DNA of 64,000 bases. It comes from Basidiobolus meristosporus CBS 931.73. Taxonomy: Eukaryota > Fungi > Basidiobolomycota. Positions within the stretch are counted from its first letter, which is position 1, and each line of letters begins with the position of its first letter. Under the pieces are notes generated by a model. The model made no database searches. It saw nothing but the letters and a program-made list of their open reading frames with translations, and had not been told where the DNA came from. Made by a program: the position numbers and the translations under genes. The stretch is taken from NCBI GenBank assembly GCA_002104905.1, contig MCFE01000080.1:62001-126000 (forward strand), read 5' to 3'. This document shows, in pieces, positions 13,700 to 54,790 of the stretch.

Positions 13700-14158
13700 C
13701 TAACAATTCCAATGTGGGGAATATTAAGTCTATCCTATCCTATTTGAAATCCCTCCTAGATAAAAAAACTCAAGTGTTTTCATTGCATTCATTCTATAAC
13801 TATTCTGGCAGTTACAACAATTCATATTTTATACTGTTGGGTCAACCCTGTTTATTTGTTTGCCCACTACAACCTTGGGTATTCCACATATATTTGAAAT
13901 CAAAAAATATTACAGCCTCCTGCTTACTAACCTTTACAAATGCTCAGACTGCCACAATTCACATACTTCTATCACCTCAACTTTACAGCTTTTTGGTTTG
14001 ATACTTGCAAAGTTACCATATACCTTGTATTGCAGGTAACATATAACATGGGCAAACATATGCTTGGTTGCTGCCACTTCAGCCATGTATTCCTTCATTG
14101 TATCTGCAAAAAACTTTTTGGTATTTAGCTAATATATTATCTCTCCCTGCTGAACTCA
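13700..14158 (-). pseudogene. Decayed CACTA transposase 3' fragment
   Basis: Colinear with 28250-28570 and 31200-31520. Confidence 0.7.
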
Positions 14159-14623
14159 CCCCATGTAATATTATGGAGATGATCCCATCAAAAGGCCATC
14201 ATAAAGTTAAAGTACCATGACAAAGAGGCACTGGTCCTGTCAGGTTACCATCCAGAGACCATTGAAAATAACTGCACCCCAGATATCACAAGAAACTTAG
14301 TCAAAATGTTTCATCACAACAATGTATAAGTGGCTCTTGATTGGTTCCCTGCCAATTTGCCCACTTTCTGATCCTGGACACTCTATTACCTCCTACATTT
14401 GTGTATATTGATTGGCTATTGCCTCATATTCACACTCCTTACTTCCTGACTCAGCCATTTCTTTAACTCTTCATGTGTACAAATTGATTTATTTCTGTTG
14501 AAACTTCAGTTGTACCTCAATTGCCAATTGTTTTGGCCTATACAAGTCCCTATACCCTACACCAACATGAAGCCCAACCCCACACTCAACAAGTAACTCC
14601 ATTAAAATCCATCACTCAATAAG

Positions 14624-15142
14624 TGTCATGATCACATGACAACCATGAATACCCATGCCAAGTTTCAGCTCCCTAGCTCAATTTCTAAGAGATTCCTTCT
14701 GGAACCTTCTACCACCTTCCAGAAAGTTCCTGACCATTCCAAATCATTGTTACACAATGGAACATTCCATAGAAGCTTTCCATTGTATTTTTCATAGTCC
14801 AATACCTTATATGGAGATACCAGGTCACATGACTTAGTCACATGATCAGGTGACCCAATCCATTTCCCCATCCTGTCTCAGTGCCGTGTCATCTATGTCA
14901 ATATCCCCAGCACCATTGCTGTGCCTCACCCCACAACCCTATTAGTATTAGCTAATATCTCTTGGCATCAGTATAGCCAAAAGTATATATAGTCCTATCA
15001 GCCCTTAAGTATTCCTCAGTCTGATAAACACAGGTCTTGAATAAACAGCCTTCCTTGAATCCTGCCTTGCCTTGATGGTCCACACCTAAGTCCTTTCCTG
15101 CTGTGCCTAGCTTTTCCTCCTGCCTTGTGTCTATTCATAACA
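14624..15142 (+). repeat. Gypsy-1 5' LTR (family A)
   Basis: TGTCATG...CATAACA; TATA-like TATATATA at 14984. Confidence 0.95.
14696..14730. promoter_or_regulatory. Two perfect three-unit heat-shock elements in the Gypsy-1 LTR
   Basis: cTTCt-gGAAc-cTTCt (14696-14710) and cTTCc-aGAAa-gTTCc (14716-14730) match the alternating nGAAn consensus bound by HSF. Confidence 0.6.
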
Positions 15143-15269
15143 GTTTTATCAGACTCTCATGACTTACCTGTGAATCCCTGCCTTCTGCCCAAAGTTTGAA
15201 GAAAACTTGTAAAAGGAATACTCACCATAAGTATCACCCATCATCTTTCCCTAGTCTTGTCCTATAAAG

Positions 15270-15520
15270 GCAAAGATACTTTATCTTTGTAAAACTATTG
15301 GTCAAAGCTGCATTCACTTTATTACCCTGCTGGTGGAGTTTACAGTTGTTACAGTATTGGAAGCTTTAGTACAATACTCTATCAAAGGACGTCAAAACCA
15401 GTACCTTCTGAAGTGACGCTAACTTATTTAAGTTGGGAATTGTGGCTCAATAGTTGTATTCTTGACATACTAGTGGCTTTACAAACCCACAATCTAGTTT
15501 AGTATATTCCAGTATTCCTT
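15270..15520 (+). ncRNA. Putative structured cis-acting RNA in the Gypsy-1 5' leader
   Basis: Homologous to 18030-18287; stems are kept through compensatory changes; lies directly upstream of gag. Confidence 0.55.
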
Positions 15521-15548
15521 GCAAGTTCATCCGCCTTCCTCTGCTACC

Positions 15549-16481
15549 ATGTCCAACCTAGAGCTGAACTTTGCCCAGCTCATGGCTGCCTTTACCCAAC
15601 TGCAGCAAGACCATGCAGACCTCAGAAACACTCTTGCTCAGTTCCAGAACCAAAGTGTCCAGCAAACTAGCCATGTCCCAGTCTACCAAGAACCCAAGTA
15701 TACTCCTGCTACCAAGTTCAATGGCTCTCAGAATGAATTCCGTGGCTTCATCAACATGGTGAAGAACAATCTTGCACTCCAGCCCAACTGGTACCCCACT
15801 GACCAGGCCAAAGTTGGTTTCATCTCCAACCTGCTTACTGGTACAGCTCTCAAGTGGTTCTCCCCATCAGTGGAGACCAACTCTCCCCTCCTCAGAGACT
15901 ACCAAGCTTTTCTCACTGAAATGGAGCTAACAGTTGGTAACCTTGACCAAGCCAGAACTGCTGCCAACAAGATCAAGACCCTCAAGCAAGGGAACAAACC
16001 AGCATCAGTCTACGCCTCAGAATTCCGACAACTCTTCAGTGACCTCAGCTCCTGGGGTCAAGCAGCCTTGATTAGCCAATTCCAAGATGGCCTCAATGAT
16101 GAAGTTTGTGATCTGCTACTCACACTCCCAGATCCAGATACATTGGTTGAAGCTATGCACCAAGTAATCCAGTGTGATAACAGACTATTCCAGAAGAAGC
16201 AAAAGAACCGTCAAAGACACATTCCTGTTGCAGTCCCAGCCCCTCCTGCTCCCCAAGTCACTCCAGAAGATCATATGCAGATTGATAGTGCCAAATACAA
16301 GAAACTATCAAAGAGTGAAAAGTCCAGACGTCAACAAGCCAACCTCTGTCTATACTGCAGCCAACCAGGTCACTTTGCCAAGTCCTGCCCCAACAAGAAG
16401 TCCAGCTTCAAGCTGATGCAGTCCTCCAGCAACCAACCTGATTCAGATCTGTTGGGAAACTCCAATGTCCAGTTGCACTGA
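15549..16481 (+). CDS. Gypsy-1 Gag (capsid plus CCHC zinc knuckle)
   Basis: Open frame 15519-16481 with first ATG at 15549; KFNGSQNEFRGF, LKQGNKPASVYASEF, QFQDGLNDEV and CLYCSQPGHFAKSC motifs. Confidence 0.9.
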   Translation: MSNLELNFAQLMAAFTQLQQDHADLRNTLAQFQNQSVQQTSHVPVYQEPKYTPATKFNGSQNEFRGFINMVKNNLALQPNWYPTDQAKVGFISNLLTGTALKWFSPSVETNSPLLRDYQAFLTEMELTVGNLDQARTAANKIKTLKQGNKPASVYASEFRQLFSDLSSWGQAALISQFQDGLNDEVCDLLLTLPDPDTLVEAMHQVIQCDNRLFQKKQKNRQRHIPVAVPAPPAPQVTPEDHMQIDSAKYKKLSKSEKSRRQQANLCLYCSQPGHFAKSCPNKKSSFKLMQSSSNQPDSDLLGNSNVQLH

Positions 16482-16498
16482 CAGGCTTGCAACTGGAC
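16454..16498 (+). other. -1 programmed ribosomal frameshift signal between gag and pol
   Basis: G GGA AAC is in X XXY YYZ phase with gag; 6-nt spacer; perfect 11-bp stem GTCCAGTTGCA/TGCAACTGGAC; the -1 frame is open into the protease. Confidence 0.85.
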
Positions 16499-19400
16499 CC
16501 ACCCATGAAAATCCAGCATATCCAAGAATCTTCCTTTGCCACAAAATCTATCCAGTCCTTGAGAATGCCTGTCAAAATCCAGATCCCTGACTCCAGTCCT
16601 GTCCCAGTCCTAGCCCTGATTGATTCCGGTGCTTCATCCTGTTTCATTGACCAAGCCTTTGTCCAGAAGCACTCTATTCCTGTTACCTTGAAATCCTGTC
16701 AGTCCAAGTAGAAGTTATTGATGGAAGATCACTCTCCTCTGGTGCCGTTACCCATGAAACATGCTTACTTCAGCTGTTCAGTACTTCTCACCAAGAAAGA
16801 ATTGCCTTCAACATCATCAACTCACCACACTATCCTATTGTGCTTGGAAGCTCATTGCTGAGCTACCACAATCCAAGTATTGATTGGAAATCCAAAATCC
16901 TGTCATTCACCAGAGCCCACCAAGTCAACTCCATGAAATCTCCAGACCCTGACAACCGTGAAAAGACTGTTGCCAACAGTTCAACAGCCCAAGATACCAT
17001 GCCAGCTGAAGGAGCCCCCTCAGCAAACATACCAGCCAAGTACCAAGAGTTTGCCCCTGTGTTTGACAAGAAGAAAGCAGAACTCCTCCCTGACCATTGG
17101 CCTTATGACTGCCCTATTGACCTTGAAGATGGAAAAGCCCCTCCATTTGGCCCAATATATAACCTCTCCCAGCCAGAGTTGAAAGAACTCCATGGTTATA
17201 TTGAAGAAAACCTCCAGAAGGGTTTTATTCAGCACTCCAAATCACCTGCTGGAGCCCCAATCCTCTTTGTCAAGTAGAAGGATGGCATACTCAGAATGTG
17301 TGTGGACTACCATTGTAGTGGGGTGACAGTGACACCCACTGACAGATGTGCTCATTCCCTTATTTTCTACTTCCCTATATCCCTACTACACTCATTTTAG
17401 TTTTATCCCATTTGTCTTACCCAATCAGTACTATCCCATAAGCCGGTTGACTATCACACCTGCTTACCTTATTGCATAAGTTACCCCTCACTTTATGTAA
17501 GATTACTAGCTACAAGTGCTTCTATATTAGGCAAGTACCCGTGTCAGTACCCGTGACACAGGATCAACCCATGTCACCATCCCTAACCTTTCCATACCAT
17601 ATATGGTATCCCCAAGTTACACAGGTTTCAGGATACTGATTCCTGATTGGTTGGATGTGCTGTGCCTCTTAGAACCTTCCGGCACCTACTTAGAACATTC
17701 TTAGGTCATTCTGATGTCATTAAGATTTCTATTGATATCCGGAACCTTCTGGAACACCATGATTAGTAATCACTTAGCCAGTAAGAAAAGTATATAAGGG
17801 AGGCTATCCCTCAACAATAAATCATCATCCCTTTTATCAATATACCAACTTGTTGATTAGTGTGATCACTGCTACCTGCTGCTACCTGAACTTCCAACCC
17901 TAGACCACAGGACACTCCCAGGAAACCACGCTGACAGCCAACTGACCTTGGAGGCACTACTTGTGAGGAATACTCAGAGTAGGTATCTTTTATTATATTT
18001 GATTCTTTCCCAAGTTTGTTCTTGTACAGGCAAAGATACTTTTCTGTCTTTGCAACTATTGACCACAGCTGCATTCTTATCAAGTCCCTACTGGTGGAGT
18101 TTACAGTTGTTTTGACTTTGGAAGCTTTAGTACATTGTCATCTCAAAGGACGCTGAACCCAGGACATACATTTGTTAAGACGCCAACTAAGTTGGGGATT
18201 GTAGCTCAATAGTTTTCCCTTGACAAGCTTGTGGCTTTATTCCCCTTCACATTAGATTAGAGACAGAACCCATGTATTCCTAGCAAGCTTTTGCCAGAGG
18301 TTATTGCACCCAGTGAACACCCCACACACAAAACACTTGAGAAGTGTTGGACGTATCTCTCCCTTGGACTTATACACCATCACACCGTGCTTTGAATAAG
18401 ATCACAGTCAAGAACCGCTACCCCCTGCCCCTGATCAACACACTGTTGGATCAGCTATCTGCTGCCCAAGTCTTCACCAAGATTGACTTGAGAGGAGCTT
18501 ACAATCTTGTCAGAATCAAGCCTGGTGATGAATGGAAAACTGCCTTTTGCACAAGATATGGTCACTTTGAGTACAAAGTAATGCCATTTGGCCTCACCAA
18601 TGCCCCTGCTGTGTTTCAACACCTCATGAATGACATATTCCGTGAATACCTTGACCAATTTGTGGTAATCTACCTTGATGATATTCTCATATACTCCAAG
18701 AGCCAAGATGAACATGATGAACATGTCAAGAAAGTATTGAGAAAACTAGACTCTGCTGGTCTCTATGCCAAGCTAGAGAAGTGTGAATTTGACCAGAGAG
18801 AAGTGGAGTTTCTTGGTTACCTCATCAGCCCTGAGGGAACAAGAATGAACCCAAAGAAAGTTGACTTAGTCCAATCCTGGAAACTCCAAGCTCAGTCAAG
18901 GAAGTACAATCCTTCCTGGGATTTGCCAACTTCTATTGCAGGTTCATAGCCAACTACTCCAAGATAGTCACCCCTCTGACAAAGCTTACCCAGAAGAACA
19001 CACCTTTTGCCTGGAATGAGGAGCAATCCAGTTCATTCAACCAACTCAAGAAATCTTTCCTGAAGGCCCCCCTGCTTACCCACCCTGACCTTGAGAAGCA
19101 ATTCATAGTGGAGACTGATGCTTCTGATTTTGCCCTTGGTGCCATACTCTCCCAGTATGATGAGGACAATGTGTTGCACCCCATTGCATTCTACTCTCGG
19201 AAGTTTTCCCCTGCAGAGATCAACTATGATATCTATGATAAGGAGTTACTTGCCATCATTGTAGCCTTTGAGCAATGGAGACACTACCTGGATGGTGCAA
19301 AACACAAAATCAAAGTCTTCTGCGACCATAAGAACCTTGAGTACTTTGCAACTTCCAAAGTACTAAACCGGAGACAAGCCAGATGGTTACTCTTCCTGTC

Positions 19401-21075
19401 CAGCTTTGACTTTACTATCATCTATAGACCTGGTGCAAAGCAAGGAAAGCCTGATGCACTGTCCAGAAAAAAGGAATACGCCCTGGAAGAGGGAGATGAT
19501 GCCTGTTGGCAAATGGAACACCCATTGCTGAGCAAGAAACATTTTGAGATTCTTGCCACCAAGTCCTCAAGTCTTGTCATCCCTTCATTCCTTGTAAGGA
19601 TATCAGAATCCCAAGCCTCTGATATGATTTCCAGCACTGTCAAGAAATATCTGGAATCCCCAGTTGGGTCCCCTCCCAAGTTCCCAAACATCCAGAACCT
19701 GCATTTGGTAAACAACCTCATCCACCACAAGCAGCAGCTTTATGTCCCAGACCTTGCCACCCAGCTAGACATCATTAAGTCTCGGCATGATTCTATGGCT
19801 GCAGGCCACTTTGGTACTGCCAAAACCTTGAATGCTATCAAAAGAGATTTCTGGTGGCCTAGAATGATAACTCTTATCAAAGAATACATTCTGACTTGTG
19901 ATATTTGCAACCGTGCAAAACCAGCCAGACACCAGCCCTATGGACTTCTTCAGCCCTTGCCTATCCCAGAACACCAATGGAGATCTATATCTATGGACTT
20001 CATTACTGACCTCCCTGAGTCATGTGGCTTCAATGCTATACTTGTAGTGGCTGACCGGCTGACCAAGATGGCTCACTTTATCCCTTGCTGTAAGAACACC
20101 AATGCAAAAGAAACTGCTGTTTTAGTCCTGAAGAATATTTTCCACCTTCATGGTATCCCCAGTGATATTGTGACAGATAGAGGCCCACAGTTTGTGTCCA
20201 AGTTTTGGAAACACTTCATGCAATACCTTGGTGTTCAAGTCAAGCTCTCTACTGCCTTCCATCCACAGTCTGATGGCCAGACTGAAAGAATCAACCAGAT
20301 TCTAGAGCAATACCTCCGGTGCTATATCAATTACCAGCAAGACAATTGGGTTGATCTACTCCCTGTTGCTGAGTTTGCCTACAACAACTCAAGCCATAGT
20401 GCAACCGGTATTACACCATTTTATGCAAACTATGGATTCCACCCTCAGTTTGATATCCAGATTCCAACAAACCCAATAAGCCCACATGCGGCTGAACATG
20501 CCCAAGCAATCCAGGACATCCAGAACACCCTCAAGGAAGAGCTATCCTTAGCTCAGGAAAGCTACAAGAGATTTGCCAATCTAAAACGGCATCCCAGCCC
20601 TGATCTTATTGAAGGAGATTCTGTATGGTTGCCCAGAAGAAACATCAGCACCAACTGCCCTTGTGACAAGTTGGATATCAAGAAACTTGGTCCCTTCAAG
20701 ATCAAGAAGAAGCTTAGCCCTATAGTATATCAGCTACAGTTACCAGCAAGTATGAAAATCCATGATACTTTCCATGTGTCCCTCCTGGAGCCGTATTGTA
20801 GGAACACATTGCCAAACCAGCAAGAAGCAAAGCCCCAAGCAATCCAGGTTGACCAACATCAAGAATTTGAAGTTAAACAGATTCTAGACTCCAAGTATAT
20901 CCGGTCAAAGCTGTACTACTTAGTAGACTGGATTGGTTATGATCCAAGTGACCAAACATGGGAACCAGCTACCCATCTCACTAATTGTCAAGATCTAGTT
21001 ACCCATTTCCACCAACAATATCCTGCAAAACCTGCCCCAAAGGGAAACAGAGCTTTGCCTGGCAGAGGAGAATAG
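16460..21075 (+). pseudogene. Gypsy-1 Pol (PR-RT-RH-IN-chromodomain), disrupted
   Basis: [52 protein letters not shown] and chromodomain FEVKQILD..YLVDWIGY..TWEP. Frameshifts near 16700 and 18890, a stop at 17275, and a solo-LTR insertion at 17314. Confidence 0.95.
17314..18384 (+). repeat. Solo LTR (family C, related to the Gypsy-3 LTR) inserted in the Gypsy-1 RT
   Basis: TGTAGT...CATCACA; splits the codons GAC TAC CGT GCT (DYRA); 4-bp TSD CCAT/CCGT; shares its U3 core and 3' end with 45189-45992. Confidence 0.9.
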
Positions 21076-21595
21076 TGTCATGATCACATGACAACCATGA
21101 ACACCCATGCCAAGTTTCAGCTCCCTAGCTCAATTTCTAAGAGATTCCTTCTGGAACCTTCTACCACCTTCCAGAAAGTTCCTGGCCATTCCAAATCATT
21201 GTTACACAATGGAACATTCCATAGAAGCTTTCCATTGTATTTTTCATAGTCCAATACCATATATGGAGATACCAGGTCACATGACTTAGTCACATGATCA
21301 GGTGACCCAATCCATTTCCCCATCCTGTCTCAGTGCCGTGTCATCTATGTCAATATCCCCAGCACCATTGCTGTGCCTCACCCCACAACCCCATTAGTAT
21401 TAGCTAATATCTCTTGGCATCAGAATAGCCAAAAGTATATATAGTCCCATCAGCCCTTAAGTATTCCTCAGTCTGATAAACACAGGTCTTGAATAAACAG
21501 CCTTGCCTTGAATCATGCCTTGCCTTGATGGTCCACACCTAAGTCCTTTCTTGCTGTGCCTAGCTTTTCCTCCTGCCTTGTGTCTATTCATAACA
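21076..21595 (+). repeat. Gypsy-1 3' LTR
   Basis: Direct repeat of 14624-15142, preceded by the purine tract GGCAGAGGAGAATAG. Confidence 0.95.
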
Positions 21596-44877: not shown

Positions 44878-46070
44878 AGCAACGGATTTGGATACTTATA
44901 CAGCAGTATATTGGCATCAACCTGGTCTTATATGAAGTATATATGAAAACTAATGTGATTGTTGAATTTTCCATATATTATGCATGATGCATCTTGGATC
45001 GCATTGACACAGATCAGATCACATCAATTGCAGATTTCCTATTTGATTATAGACCTATGATTAAAGCATCAATAAAAGTACCAAGGCATTGTTTGCGGAT
45101 GATTTTTGCAACATAATGATGGGATACATGGCAATTGATGGAGATTTAACCATAATGTATTAAAAATCAGATAAATAAGGCGGATCGGTGTGGTGGTGTA
45201 GAGGTACTCCTGGGAGAAGCTACACAACTCAAGGTGTGTGAGGTGTCTGATGGGTGCAATAACCTCTGTGTCTAAACTGCTGGTGTCTATGTCAATATGT
45301 CACTATGGTAAAAGCTCCTGCTTCTTTAGCTTCCTAGGTGCTCCAAGTGTCTCCAAAGGCCTCTGTGTGTCTTGTGCACTACCCTGAAAAGCTCCTTGAT
45401 GGCAGGTCTTAGATGTACTGTTGAAGGCAGGTGCAGTGATCAACTGCTAATCAATAAGGTAGAAGTGTTACTGATAGAAGGGATGATTTATTGATGAGGG
45501 ATTGCTTTCCCTTAAATACTTTTCCTGATTGCCAAGTGATTACTAATGACAAGGTTCTAGAAGATTCTAGGTATCAGTGGAATTCTTGATGACATCACTA
45601 TGAGCTAAAAATATGCCAAGAATGTCCTGGAAGATTCTAAAAGGCACAGCACTCTCAACCAATCAGGAATCAGTAGTCTGAAACCTGTGCAACATAGAAA
45701 TACCATATATGGTATTGAAATGGTAGAGATGGTAACACAGACCTAGGTCATGTGTCACGGGTACTGACGTGAGTACTTGCCTTATATAGATACATCTACT
45801 GATCACAAAGCCGAATAACATCTGGGATAACTAATGCTAATAACTAATCAGGGTAAACATCATATGGGGATAATACTGATAATATGGGCAAAAGAAGAAT
45901 GGGATAATACTGATAAGATAAAATATGGATAAGTATATCATAATGACTATATGAATAAACTTGTCTGTGGGAGGTATGTTTACCCTACCACATCCACCCC
46001 CCACTTGAGCTAAAAAGTTTCAGGGAACTTTTTAGCTAACCACTGTAAGTTTGGAGAACAAAGTGCTCTC

Positions 46071-47997: not shown

Positions 47998-48857
47998 AAT
48001 ATGTGGTGGTGTAGAGGTACTCCTGGGAGAAGCTACACAACTCAAGGTGTGTGAGGTGTCTGATGGGTGCAATAACCTCTGTGTCTAAACTGCTGGTGTC
48101 TATGTCAATATGTCACTATGGTAAAAGCTCCTGCTTCTTTAGCTTCTTAGGTGCTCCAAGTGTCTCCAAAGGCCTCTGTGTGTCTTGTGCACTACCCTGA
48201 AAAGCTCCTTGATGGCAGGTCTTAGATGTACTGTTGAAGGCAGGTGCAGTGATCAACTGCTAATCAATAAGGTAGAAGTGTTACTGATAGAAGGGATGAT
48301 TTATTGATGAGGGATTGCTTTCCCTTAAATACTTTTCCTGATTGCCAAGTGATTACTAATGACAAGGTTCTAGAAGATTCTAGGTATCAGTGGAATTCTT
48401 GATGACATCACTATGAGCTAAAAATATGCCAAGAATGTCCTGGAAGATTCTAAAAGGCACAGCACTCTCAACCAATCAGGAATCAGTAGTCTGAAACCTG
48501 TGCAACATAGAAATACCATATATGGTATTGAAATGGTAGAGATGGTAACACAGACCTAGGTCATGTGTCACGGGTACTGACGTGAGTACTTGCCTTATAT
48601 AGATACATCTACTGATCACAAAGCCGAATAACATCTGGGATAACTAATGCTAATAACTAATCAGGGTAAACATCATATGGGGATAATACTGATAATATGG
48701 GCAAAAGAAGAATGGGATAATACTGATAAGATAAAATATGGATAAGTATATCATAATGACTATATGAATAAACTTGTCTGTGGGAGGTATGTTTACCCTA
48801 CCACATCGGGCCAAATTGATTCAAACCGCCTTAATACAATCATCCACCAATTTTAAT

Positions 48858-52214: not shown

Positions 52215-54790
52215 ATGCCGCCAAAAAATAAAGCAAAGTCATCTGGTTCCTAACCAAACCCCACCACTGGTGGCAGCAGAAGTAAGGATGGACAACAGCT
52301 TGCTTTGACATTCAGTGCAACAAGCAATGCTACATCCAAAAAAGGCCATGTTAACAGTGTGCCCATTGAAGGTGATAATGAGGACTCCTCACACTCTCTG
52401 TCAAGTAGGCATTTGGGAAGCTCTGCAAAGCCACAAGCTGACTGTTATGCTTAGGCAGATGAGAATATAGCACATACAGTACCCTCAGTTGAAGACCAGC
52501 TAGTAGACATCATAACATCACCACAACCCATATTAGCAGGTATGTAGTCAGCTCATACCAATGCATTAATGAAGCAACTAAGTGCAGTGGCTGATAGCAT
52601 AGATGCAATGACCCAGAGAAATCAGAAAACAGTCCAGAAAGAAGATGAGCAGATAATACATGTAGAGCAATGAATATCCCCGGTAGAGAAAGCAGTATCT
52701 TTGCTGCAAAGAAGGAACTCAAGTGGCTCAATATCACAGCCAAGAATTGAGCCATTTCCCAATGTAACAGCTGAGGAACACCATACAGTCTTTGAATCAC
52801 AACAACAGTGCCCAAAGATAAAGCCCAGATATTAACCTATCACAGTGTTTGAGGGAGACAATGTGGTGTTTATACTAAAATCTAAAAATCAAAACACATT
52901 GAAGATCTGTGAAGTTGTTGAGTGCAAAGATGAAGAGTGGGCTAATATTCAAGAGGCTGTCAGAAGTTTAGCATGCCATCACCTTAAGGCCAGCATACCA
53001 TGGGACCATCAGGAACTCAAGGCCAAGTGGAATACACTTGACTTGTGCCATGAGCAGTATGCTGGGCTTTAACAGGCAAATGAATTTTGGGCCAGCATTG
53101 GTAAGCTAAGAAAGTATCTTAAAAATAGCAGAAACTATCTGTTATGAATAGACACAAGGCAGGAGAGTAGGGCTAGGCAAGGCAGGACCAGGAAAGGACT
53201 TAGGTGTGGATTAACAAGGCAAGGCGGATTTCCAAGGCAAGGCTGTTTATTCAAGACCTGTGTTTATCAGACTGAGGAATACTTAAGGGGGGATAGGACT
53301 ATATATACTTTTTGCCTATACTGATGCCAAGAGATATTAGCTAATACTAATGGGGTTGTGGGATGAGGCACAGCAATGGTGCTGGGGATATTGACATAGA
53401 TGACACGGCACTGAGACAGGATGGGGAAATGGATTGGGTCACCTGATCATGTGACTAAGGCATGTGACCTGTTATTTCCATATATGGTACTGGACTATGA
53501 AAAATACACTGGAAAGCTTCCATGGAATGTTCCATTGTGTAACAATGGTTTGGATGGTCAGGAACTTTCTGGAAGGTGGTAGAAGGTTCCAGAAGGAATC
53601 TCTTAGAAATTGAGCTAGGAAGCTGAAACTTGGCATGGGTGTTCATGGTTGTCATGTGATCATGACACTATCAAAGGCAGAAGAACAAGGGTGCCATGGC
53701 TAAAAACCAATGGCTTCCTCAAGAGCCTGTTACAATCAGGGCCAAAAGCTCCAGACAAGCATCAACAAGACATCAGGTAGCTGGAAGAGTGCTAATTAGG
53801 GTCAAGCAGGCTGACACAGATGCACCAGCACTACTTTTATCAAGGAAAAAGCCTAGTACCACTCAAGAAGCACTTAGTCAAAGTAGCAGTGAAGGACCTG
53901 GCAGTGATAAAAACTAGTGGCTTTGACAGGAGCCGGTCACAACTATGGTTGAGAGCTTGAAACAAGCTGAAAAAAAATCAGGTTGCCATGAGAGTGCCAC
54001 CAAGGGACAAGCAGGCCAAAACTGATGCGTCAGAGCAAAATTTATCAAGGAGAAAACATAGTTCATCACAAGAAGCACTCAGACAAAGTAGTAGTCAAAG
54101 ACCTGGCAGTGATACAGGAAAAGGTAAAGGTAAGAATGTCTAACCAAGCCTGAGACAGGGAGGCATGCAAACAAAACTGCAGTTAATGCTGCAAGCCTGG
54201 AGCAGACTGAATCCCATCATAGCCAAGAAGAATTGCCAACAAGAAAACAGCTGATTTTGCAGGAGTTGGAAGCTCAGGCAGCTGAGCTACACTCCAGCAA
54301 GGTAGATGAGTTTGCAGAAAAAGGCAACTTGCCTACCACAGCCTCCAAATCCTCCATTGTTGACAAAGTGGACATCCCACTGACAGACAAGGCTACAATG
54401 TCAAGAACTTGAAAGACTATCACGATGCCATTGGTGGGATTTTGGAACATTAATAGGCACACCAAGAGGTTGCAGCACTTCTTCAAGAGTAGTGCTCAAG
54501 AATACGTACTTGAATATTGCAAGGATTTATTGCAAAGACTGGCAGATGAGGTGCTAGACCTTGCAGTGCTGGCTGAAGACCAGGATGTGTGGGAACCAGT
54601 GAATGAACAGTGGCATAAGGATGCTAGGTTCCTGCCAAAGTTGTGAAACCAGCACATTACAGCAGAAACACTTATCAAGTGGTGGATTTTACTGGTGTTA
54701 CTTATCAAGTGTGGGGTTGGGTTTAATGTCAGTGTAGGGTATTGGGACTTGTATAGGTCAATACAATTGGCAATTGAGTTACAACTGAAG
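52215..54790 (+). pseudogene. CACTA copy 2 ORF2, disrupted by stops and a solo LTR
   Basis: ATGCCGCCAAAAAATAAAGC start; colinear with the other ORF2 copies. Confidence 0.75.
53140..53667 (-). repeat. Solo LTR of the Gypsy-1 family (A)
   Basis: Reverse complement of 14624-15142; perfect 5-bp TSD CTATC (53135-53139, 53668-53672). Confidence 0.95.

Follow-up and report, generated by a model that had tools for sequence, protein, structure and literature searches.

Background

Cis-acting RNAs in the leader decide which transcripts a retroelement packages and copies. The retroviral packaging signal Psi lies between PBS (the primer-binding site) and gag; the priming structure of the retrotransposon Tf1 lies in R-U5-PBS, that is, the repeat (R) and unique 5' (U5) parts of the long terminal repeat (LTR) together with the PBS. 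To our knowledge, very few such leader RNAs have been defined outside retroviruses and yeast Ty elements, and none in early-diverging fungi. Here we describe a leader domain of about 320 nt, hereafter the module, which occurs twice in a 64,000-nt stretch of the Basidiobolus meristosporus CBS 931.73 genome (contig MCFE01000080.1, positions 62,001 to 126,000; hereafter the window). One copy lies in the leader of an LTR retrotransposon, Gypsy-1, and the other inside LTR C, a solo LTR of an otherwise dissimilar lineage.

LTR swapping was reportedly observed in soybean by Du et al. in 2010, with chimeric LTR retrotransposons arising through recombination during reverse transcription. That retroelement RNAs packaged together can recombine is well documented (PMC6894440); background on self-priming in Tf1-type elements is given in PMC4600332. 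A first-pass annotation of the window, made from the letters alone, had proposed that two Gypsy lineages share a structured leader segment of ~250 nt, a portable cis-acting RNA exchanged between them and possibly acting as an internal ribosome entry site (IRES), a dimerization or packaging signal, or a ribozyme. The module corresponds to this segment.

Results

Two copies of one unit

The window is repeat-rich eukaryotic DNA in which copy 1 of the module (15205..15526, forward strand) occupies the Gypsy-1 leader between PBS and gag, while copy 2 (17959..18287, forward strand) occupies the presumed U5 of LTR C. Using BLASTN within the window, positions 15244-15481 align with 18004-18239 at 75% identity over 249 nt (E 2.6e-21, or 2e-33 with more sensitive settings). 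The same search returns no other similarity between the Gypsy-1 and C LTR families, so that the module is the one similarity detected between them, as had been proposed. The homology seen at first pass is therefore real, and its end at 18287 was placed exactly, but the actual unit is longer (~320 nt): with MAFFT and nhmmer the similarity stretches to 15188-15526 and 17947-18288, about 320-330 nt.

Both copies end in a common inverted repeat, ACTTG..AGGAATAC / GTATTCCT..CAAG, whose arms form a closing helix, P1, whether the minimum free energy (MFE) fold is computed for either copy or for the entire leader (15205-15222 / 15511-15526 in copy 1; 17959-17974 / 18274-18287 in copy 2). Because the repeat is present at both ends, we take 15205-15526 and 17959-18287 as the unit. 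Within it, a covariance model (R1) scores the core of copy 1 (15269..15482, forward strand) at 229.8 bits and that of copy 2 (18029-18240, forward strand) at 217.6 bits. Copy 2 lies downstream of the TATA and AATAAA of LTR C and ends about 97 nt before the end of that LTR, from which we infer that it belongs to U5. In both contexts, then, the module would be transcribed into the 5' leader of genomic RNA.

Relatives of Gypsy-1 were reached by word searches with Gag and subsequent contig look-ups in public metagenome and sequencing-run assemblies. Three elements from outside this genome carry the module upstream of gag: L001, whose Gag is 78% identical to that of Gypsy-1, and L002 and L030, whose Gags are both ~50% identical. 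The L030 contig begins within the module. The searches of Rfam 15 gave no family match at E up to 1 over the module (window positions 14000-19000; L001, L002 and L030), which agrees with its earlier description as an unrecognized family.

A fold maintained by compensatory change

A seven-helix model was derived from the Gypsy-1 copy alone, and five sequences were compared. On the forward strand, the model comprises an opening hairpin, H1 (15271-77/15283-89); two long-range helices, P2 (15293-15301/15447-55) and P3 (15307-12/15441-46); two further helices, P4 (15314-18/15412-16) and P5 (15330-34/15397-15401); an apical hairpin, P7 (15353-59/15372-78, loop 15360-71); and a hairpin, P8 (15419-23/15432-36). 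In a hand-made segment alignment, the linkers between helices vary by at most 1-3 nt among the five copies, the P8 loop excepted, and with linkers so nearly constant the helix strands fall at homologous places.

Pairing is preserved to a far greater extent than in controls in which the pairing partners were slid out of register. In a plain MAFFT alignment, 85% of cells pair, against 32-49% in the slid controls, and 14 pairs are altered on both sides, against 1-4. After realignment to R1, 88% of cells pair and 17 of 44 pairs are altered on both sides, against 0-6 in slid controls, a number that none of 500 shuffles reaches. The covarying pairs include all seven of P7, four of the five in P4 and four of the nine in P2. 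The idea that pairing is kept while sequence changes, first drawn from two copies, thus holds, and holds better with the three outside homologs added.

P7, P4 and P2 are the most telling cases. The stem of P7 has a different sequence in each of four versions (Gypsy-1 and L001 sharing one), yet it always pairs and always presents the loop CTTTAGTA; in L002 and L030, its 3' side has slipped by one position. Within P4, a flip of three pairs distinguishes Gypsy-1 from its close relative L001, and in P2, where L002 has a bulged A that L030 lacks, four pairs are swapped between the two deep groups. Strands also pair better with their own partner than with that of another element (0.94 versus 0.44 for P7, 0.92 versus 0.62 for P4). 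Several unpaired blocks are invariant, as is the apical loop. Individual features had been largely placed correctly at first pass. The long-range helix AACTATTG/CAATAGTT is found where it was reported, with AACTATTG at 15293 and 18054 and CAATAGTT at 15448 and 18206, and the 12-nt loop GAAGCTTTAGTA (15360-15371) has AGTATTG/CAATACT as its closing stem in one copy and TGAC..TG/CA..GTCA in the other. The CAACT/AGTTG hairpin is also present, although it is better read as CCAAC/GTTGG with a 3-nt loop.

The two strands of P4 deserve a separate remark. These strands (15314-15324 and 15406-15416; 358-370 and 455-465 in L001) are rewritten in Gypsy-1 relative to both L001 and LTR C, against ~90% identity elsewhere in the leader. 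Such a local burst of paired change may reflect a small conversion tract rather than stepwise substitution. A pseudoknot joining the P7 loop to the nucleotides that precede GGCTTT was considered and rejected: every copy allows 5-6 bp, but the register differs from copy to copy, which we estimate to be chance level.

Purifying selection on the module

The module core is considerably better conserved than the silent sites of the adjoining gag. Between Gypsy-1 and L001, identity is 0.88 in the module core and 0.62 at fourfold-degenerate gag sites; the corresponding values are 0.65 and 0.35 between Gypsy-1 and L002, and 0.85 and 0.27 between L002 and L030. In this last pair, module conservation exceeds even that of the first and second codon positions of gag. 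Invariant blocks of up to 15 nt are found in all five copies, and a block of 21 nt is broken by a single change, in L030.

Three points weigh against a selected fold. The five sequences amount to two deep groups plus LTR C, hence to few independent compensatory events, and the shuffle control ignores their relatedness. Folding energy is weak, with z-scores of -2.4 and -1.5 for the two copies in the window and -0.3 for the whole leader. Finally, H1 is out of register in both of the alignments that were counted, although by inspection it forms 7 of 7 pairs in every copy. Purifying selection on the core and the compensatory pairs nonetheless both support the conserved cis-acting structured RNA suggested at first pass, and we are highly confident that the module is a structured cis-RNA under selection.

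LTR C and its module-less relative, LTR B

LTR C (17314..18384, forward strand; TATA near 17793, AATAAA at 17817-17822) lies inside the reverse transcriptase (RT) gene of Gypsy-1. Its ends were set by comparison with L001 and with a related LTR, LTR B. It is flanked by a 4-bp target duplication with one mismatch, CCAT (17310-17313) and CCGT (18385-18388), the left copy showing a G-to-A change at a CpG. L001, an uninterrupted homolog, runs across the insertion point and so provides the empty site. With its TG...CA ends and its target duplication, LTR C is a true solo LTR.

LTR B (45189..45994, reverse strand; second copy at 48002-48807) is homologous to LTR C on both flanks of the module. At the position of the module itself, it has 78 unrelated nucleotides, confirming that it lacks the segment: when these are compared with the 337 nt of LTR C, 116 of 500 shuffles score equally well. 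The possibility that LTR B is a deletion derivative of LTR C was rejected on this ground, as its 78 nt have no significant similarity to the module. The copy at 48002-48807 is followed by a tRNA-type primer site starting with TGGCACCC. The LTR B element is short and lacks RT and integrase (IN); its open reading frame (ORF) encodes a CCHC knuckle and a weak aspartic-protease match, and has no similarity to Gypsy-1 Gag. From this unrelated Gag-protease-like ORF and the tRNA-type primer site, it follows that the two lineages differ. Of the two Gypsy lineages originally proposed, Gypsy-1 is indeed one, a chromovirus (see below), but C, like its relative B, is at most a putative one.

The Gypsy-1 element

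Gypsy-1 has a 5' LTR at 14618..15142 (forward strand; TATA near 14983, AATAAA at 15043-15048) and a 3' LTR at 21071-21595 that is 98% identical to it. Its gag (15549..16481, forward strand) encodes 310 aa with Retrotrans_gag and Ty3_capsid matches and a CCHC knuckle; an exact-sequence look-up found no record of this Gag. The pol domains above Pfam cut-offs are RT_RNaseH, Integrase_H2C2, rve, SH3_Tf2-1 and Chromo, and this combination of RNase H, integrase, Tf2-1-type SH3 and chromodomain identifies Gypsy-1 as a chromovirus.

The PBS (15143..15155, forward strand) adjoins the LTR and, since it does not start with TGG, is not of the tRNA type. The presumed first 11 nt of the transcript, AGTCTGATAAA (15018..15028, forward strand), are the exact reverse complement of 15145-15155 and are joined to them in the MFE fold of the presumed leader. 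They sit ~30 nt past the TATA box, the transcript start being itself deduced. Gypsy-1 is presumably a Tf1-type self-priming element in which 15018-15028 would serve as self-primer. The primer sites of L001 and L002 are of the same kind. The self-priming pair is the same in L001, and another element, L031, has a pair of different sequence.

This copy of Gypsy-1 is defective, with an in-frame TAG in RT at 17275-17277 in addition to the nesting of LTR C in the conserved CVDY..ALN motif. A third Gypsy-1 LTR, either solo or a 3' LTR, lies at 53139-53669 (reverse strand) and is 93.6% identical to the 5' LTR; no leader module was found beside it. Upstream of the 5' LTR, the Rfam family Ocean-VII matches weakly at 14324-14384 (reverse strand; 22 bits, E 0.003, gathering score 53.5), which we take to be due to chance.

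Probable origin in one Gag clade

In a tree of Gag sequences, the four module-bearing elements form one clade (UFboot 92 / SH-aLRT 92). Outside it stand L029, L031, L028 and the P0011 and P0014 families, all without the module. In L029 and L031, LTR end and primer site are of the self-priming type, yet no more than 40-50 nt separate the PBS from gag; by eye, the extra DNA of L002 relative to L029 starts and stops at the inverted repeat. Seven Gag or Pol families that are more distantly related (loci L003-L029) showed no module with nhmmer or, in the subset to which it was applied, with the covariance model. With a single clade bearing the module and module-less relatives outside, the most parsimonious account is a single gain with vertical inheritance thereafter.

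Some of the loci retrieved have features of their own. In related metagenome chromovirus families (L003 1915-2268, likewise L004-L010 and L020-L027), a conserved ORF that encodes 116-117 aa and has no Pfam match separates the end of pol from gag and probably lies inside the LTR. The called Gag of L031 (243-1628; 461 aa) has capsid-type Pfam domains listed twice, possibly owing to an internal duplication.

Motif patterns were also scanned in broader collections. Viral contigs yielded nothing for the module pattern. A 22-base two-motif pattern gave a single match among JGI metagenome contigs (L018), with no further similarity, and was set aside as chance. A 23-base pattern gave three matches among GTDB genome contigs, all in one Pseudomonadales metagenome-assembled genome (MAG), where ~0.5 was expected; these belong to a bacterial intergenic repeat sharing the pattern only, and were also attributed to chance. 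The repeat itself has at least 3 copies of ~150-250 nt (L032 3386-3433, L033 5418-5465, L034 4340-4387) and holds two of the module motifs.

Probable capture by LTR C

As the module is present in two unrelated LTR lineages, one of them must have received it from the other. By identity, the copy in LTR C is closest to L001 (0.81), then to Gypsy-1 (0.75), L002 (0.71) and L030 (0.68), and it keeps states common to L002 and L030 that were lost in Gypsy-1 and L001. Its donor was therefore an unsampled member of the clade and not the Gypsy-1 neighbor 2.7 kb away, and conversion from that neighboring leader was rejected on the same evidence. Where free exchange between lineages had been supposed, the transfer appears to have been one-way, from leader into LTR.

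The LTR C copy has remained intact. The other four sequences agree with one another at 109 columns, and it departs from them at 6 of these, when genuine leaders depart at 6-10; its helices are kept, P7 with a stem sequence of its own. Nearly all of its history was thus spent under the same constraint, which may reflect either continued selection in the C family or simply a recent capture. The target duplication around the solo LTR that holds the copy implies that replication was completed at least once by an element with this U5.

We consider it likely that the module was gained once and later captured through recombination. In the proposed sequence of events, the gain would have occurred in the ancestor of the Gypsy-1/L001/L002/L030 clade, and an unsampled member of that clade would later have given the whole domain to the U5 of an unrelated, B-related LTR family. 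Template switching between co-packaged RNAs is the probable route, or else another form of illegitimate recombination. The microhomologies at the LTR C junctions (ACTTG at the left one, AGCA at the right one) are compatible with template switching, but their shortness deprives them of weight.

Function of the module

Tentatively, we propose that the domain acts as a selection signal for genomic RNA, a Psi-like packaging domain that might also serve dimerization. This credible but uncertain assignment is made by analogy, because the domain lies between PBS and gag, is closed by a helix and has invariant unpaired motifs, and because Gag has a zinc knuckle. Invariant single-stranded motifs, among them a GGAG-containing junction and the apical loop, would be offered to the zinc-knuckle Gag, and ribosomes would still scan through the domain. 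A structured domain stands between PBS and gag in four gag-linked elements, and the leaders contain 0-1 AUG in 249-410 nt, when 4-6 are expected. This depletion implies that ribosomes must pass through the leader to reach the gag AUG, which fits scanning and argues against an IRES.

Several observations count against a packaging or dimerization role. No palindromic loop is conserved: AAGCTT is found in the P7 loop of Gypsy-1, L001 and LTR C only, and there is none there in L002 or L030, so that a kissing-loop dimer site is unsupported. In LTR C, the domain is inside the LTR and upstream of the primer site, which is not the classical position of Psi. The termini of LTR C are unlike those of the Gypsy-1 LTRs, leaving a helper relationship unsupported as well. 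Lastly, relatives replicate without the domain, which is therefore not essential for this type of element.

An extension of the packaging proposal sees in the domain a 'packaging handle' that can be transferred: the C family, with a relative (B) that encodes Gag and protease only, would have captured the RNA-selection domain of a chromovirus into its own U5. We regard this as quite unlikely. If it were true, C transcripts would enter chromovirus particles carrying RT and integrase, a case of molecular parasitism by theft of one RNA domain.

Among other functions, control of translation, in which an IRES, a shunt structure or a scanning modulator sets the Gag output of the full-length RNA, is unlikely but deserves attention. 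In four elements the gag AUG comes directly after the domain, its long closing helix could permit shunting, and AUG depletion shows that translation constrains the leader. That same depletion, however, is the look of a scanned leader and is needless for an IRES, and no Rfam IRES family matches; the IRES-like nature suggested at first pass is accordingly disfavored. In LTR C, moreover, the rest of U5 and the primer site separate the domain from any gag.

It is improbable that the module is an element for RNA stability, nuclear export or escape from silencing, one that shields the transcript or attracts a host factor regardless of the particle doing the packaging. Such an element would be portable to any retroelement transcript, in keeping with its presence in an unrelated LTR, and the invariant unpaired motifs suggest a protein-binding site. 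However, there is no specific evidence for this role, and known export elements of retroelements are usually near the 3' end.

Slightly less probable still is a regulator of self-primed reverse transcription or of the fate of the RNA, where the domain would contact the 5' end/PBS duplex and choose between translation and priming. Its restriction to a clade of self-priming elements is in favor, and the invariant AGTTTACAG block, which partly resembles the PBS, could compete for the self-primer. Against this, the complementarity to the 5' end is a mere 3+4 bp with a bulge, other self-priming relatives do without the domain, and LTR C would gain nothing from its capture, its relative B being tRNA-primed.

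We give very little credence to the view that the unit is a spliceosomal intron or a small mobile element with terminal inverted repeats, similar to an introner or to a miniature inverted-repeat transposable element (MITE), that landed independently in both contexts. The inverted repeat does bound the unit in both contexts, the gap relative to module-less L029 falls at this repeat, and GTAAGT-like and TAG motifs occur near the ends. However, neither copy has the target-site duplication expected of a MITE or a short interspersed element (SINE), no copies were found outside retroelements in the window or in 34 fetched loci, and no tRNA-like part was detected. A tRNA-like reading of the GTAGCTCAATAGTT stretch was rejected, as ARAGORN finds nothing there and the stretch is not conserved in L002 and L030. 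Nor is a GT...AG pair conserved: the candidate donor is ATAAGT in Gypsy-1, GTAAGT in L001, GTAGGT in LTR C and GTTAAG in L002, and the candidate acceptor region, in the 3' part, is absent from L002 and L030. Covarying internal helices are not needed by an intron or a MITE, and both the Gag tree and the pattern of conservation fit vertical inheritance with the element.

The self-cleaving ribozyme suggested at first pass is scarcely credible: nothing beyond a conserved structured RNA speaks for it, no Rfam ribozyme family matches at E up to 1 in the window, L001, L002 or L030, and cleavage of the leader would part the cap and primer site from gag.

Comparison with known systems

The closest parallels are the Psi domain and dimerization initiation site (DIS) of murine leukemia virus (MLV), human immunodeficiency virus type 1 (HIV-1) and BARE. 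As in these systems, the module is a conserved, structured leader domain of several hundred nucleotides between PBS and gag, with invariant unpaired motifs available to a zinc-knuckle Gag and a leader free of upstream AUGs. It differs in having neither a conserved palindromic kissing loop nor any sequence or Rfam similarity to them, and its role is putative. Moreover, it is absent from close relatives, and the copy of the second lineage is internal to an LTR and precedes the primer site.

With regard to priming, Gypsy-1 resembles the Tf1/sushi group (Tf1, Tj1; PMC4600332) in having a PBS that adjoins the LTR and can pair with the presumed transcript over its first 11 nt, and an integrase with a chromodomain and a Tf2-1-type SH3. 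The module, however, lies downstream of the PBS and is additional to the Tf1 priming structure; we found no description of a similar domain for Tf1 in the literature.

The LTR C copy finds its counterpart in chimeric LTR retrotransposons (reviewed in PMC6894440) and in hitch-hiking of the VL30/MLV type. Here too, a segment of one lineage is found inside another, and co-packaging with template switching is the accepted route. Lacking RT and IN, B would need proteins from other elements, as in VL30/MLV-type hitch-hiking, a helper relationship that is only supposed in the present case. What sets LTR C apart is that a single helix-closed leader domain was moved, rather than a whole LTR or a coding block, and that it moved into U5 between lineages with different priming modes and no other detectable similarity.

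Structured leaders and inter-element recombination are both known, and no new principle is involved. The module represents a family not described before, and its natural transplantation into an LTR of an otherwise dissimilar lineage is unusual. Its clear bounds, a fold backed by covariation, relatives with and without it and the natural transplant provide a test system for the role of leader domains and for their trading between lineages, and as Basidiobolus is culturable, such tests are feasible.

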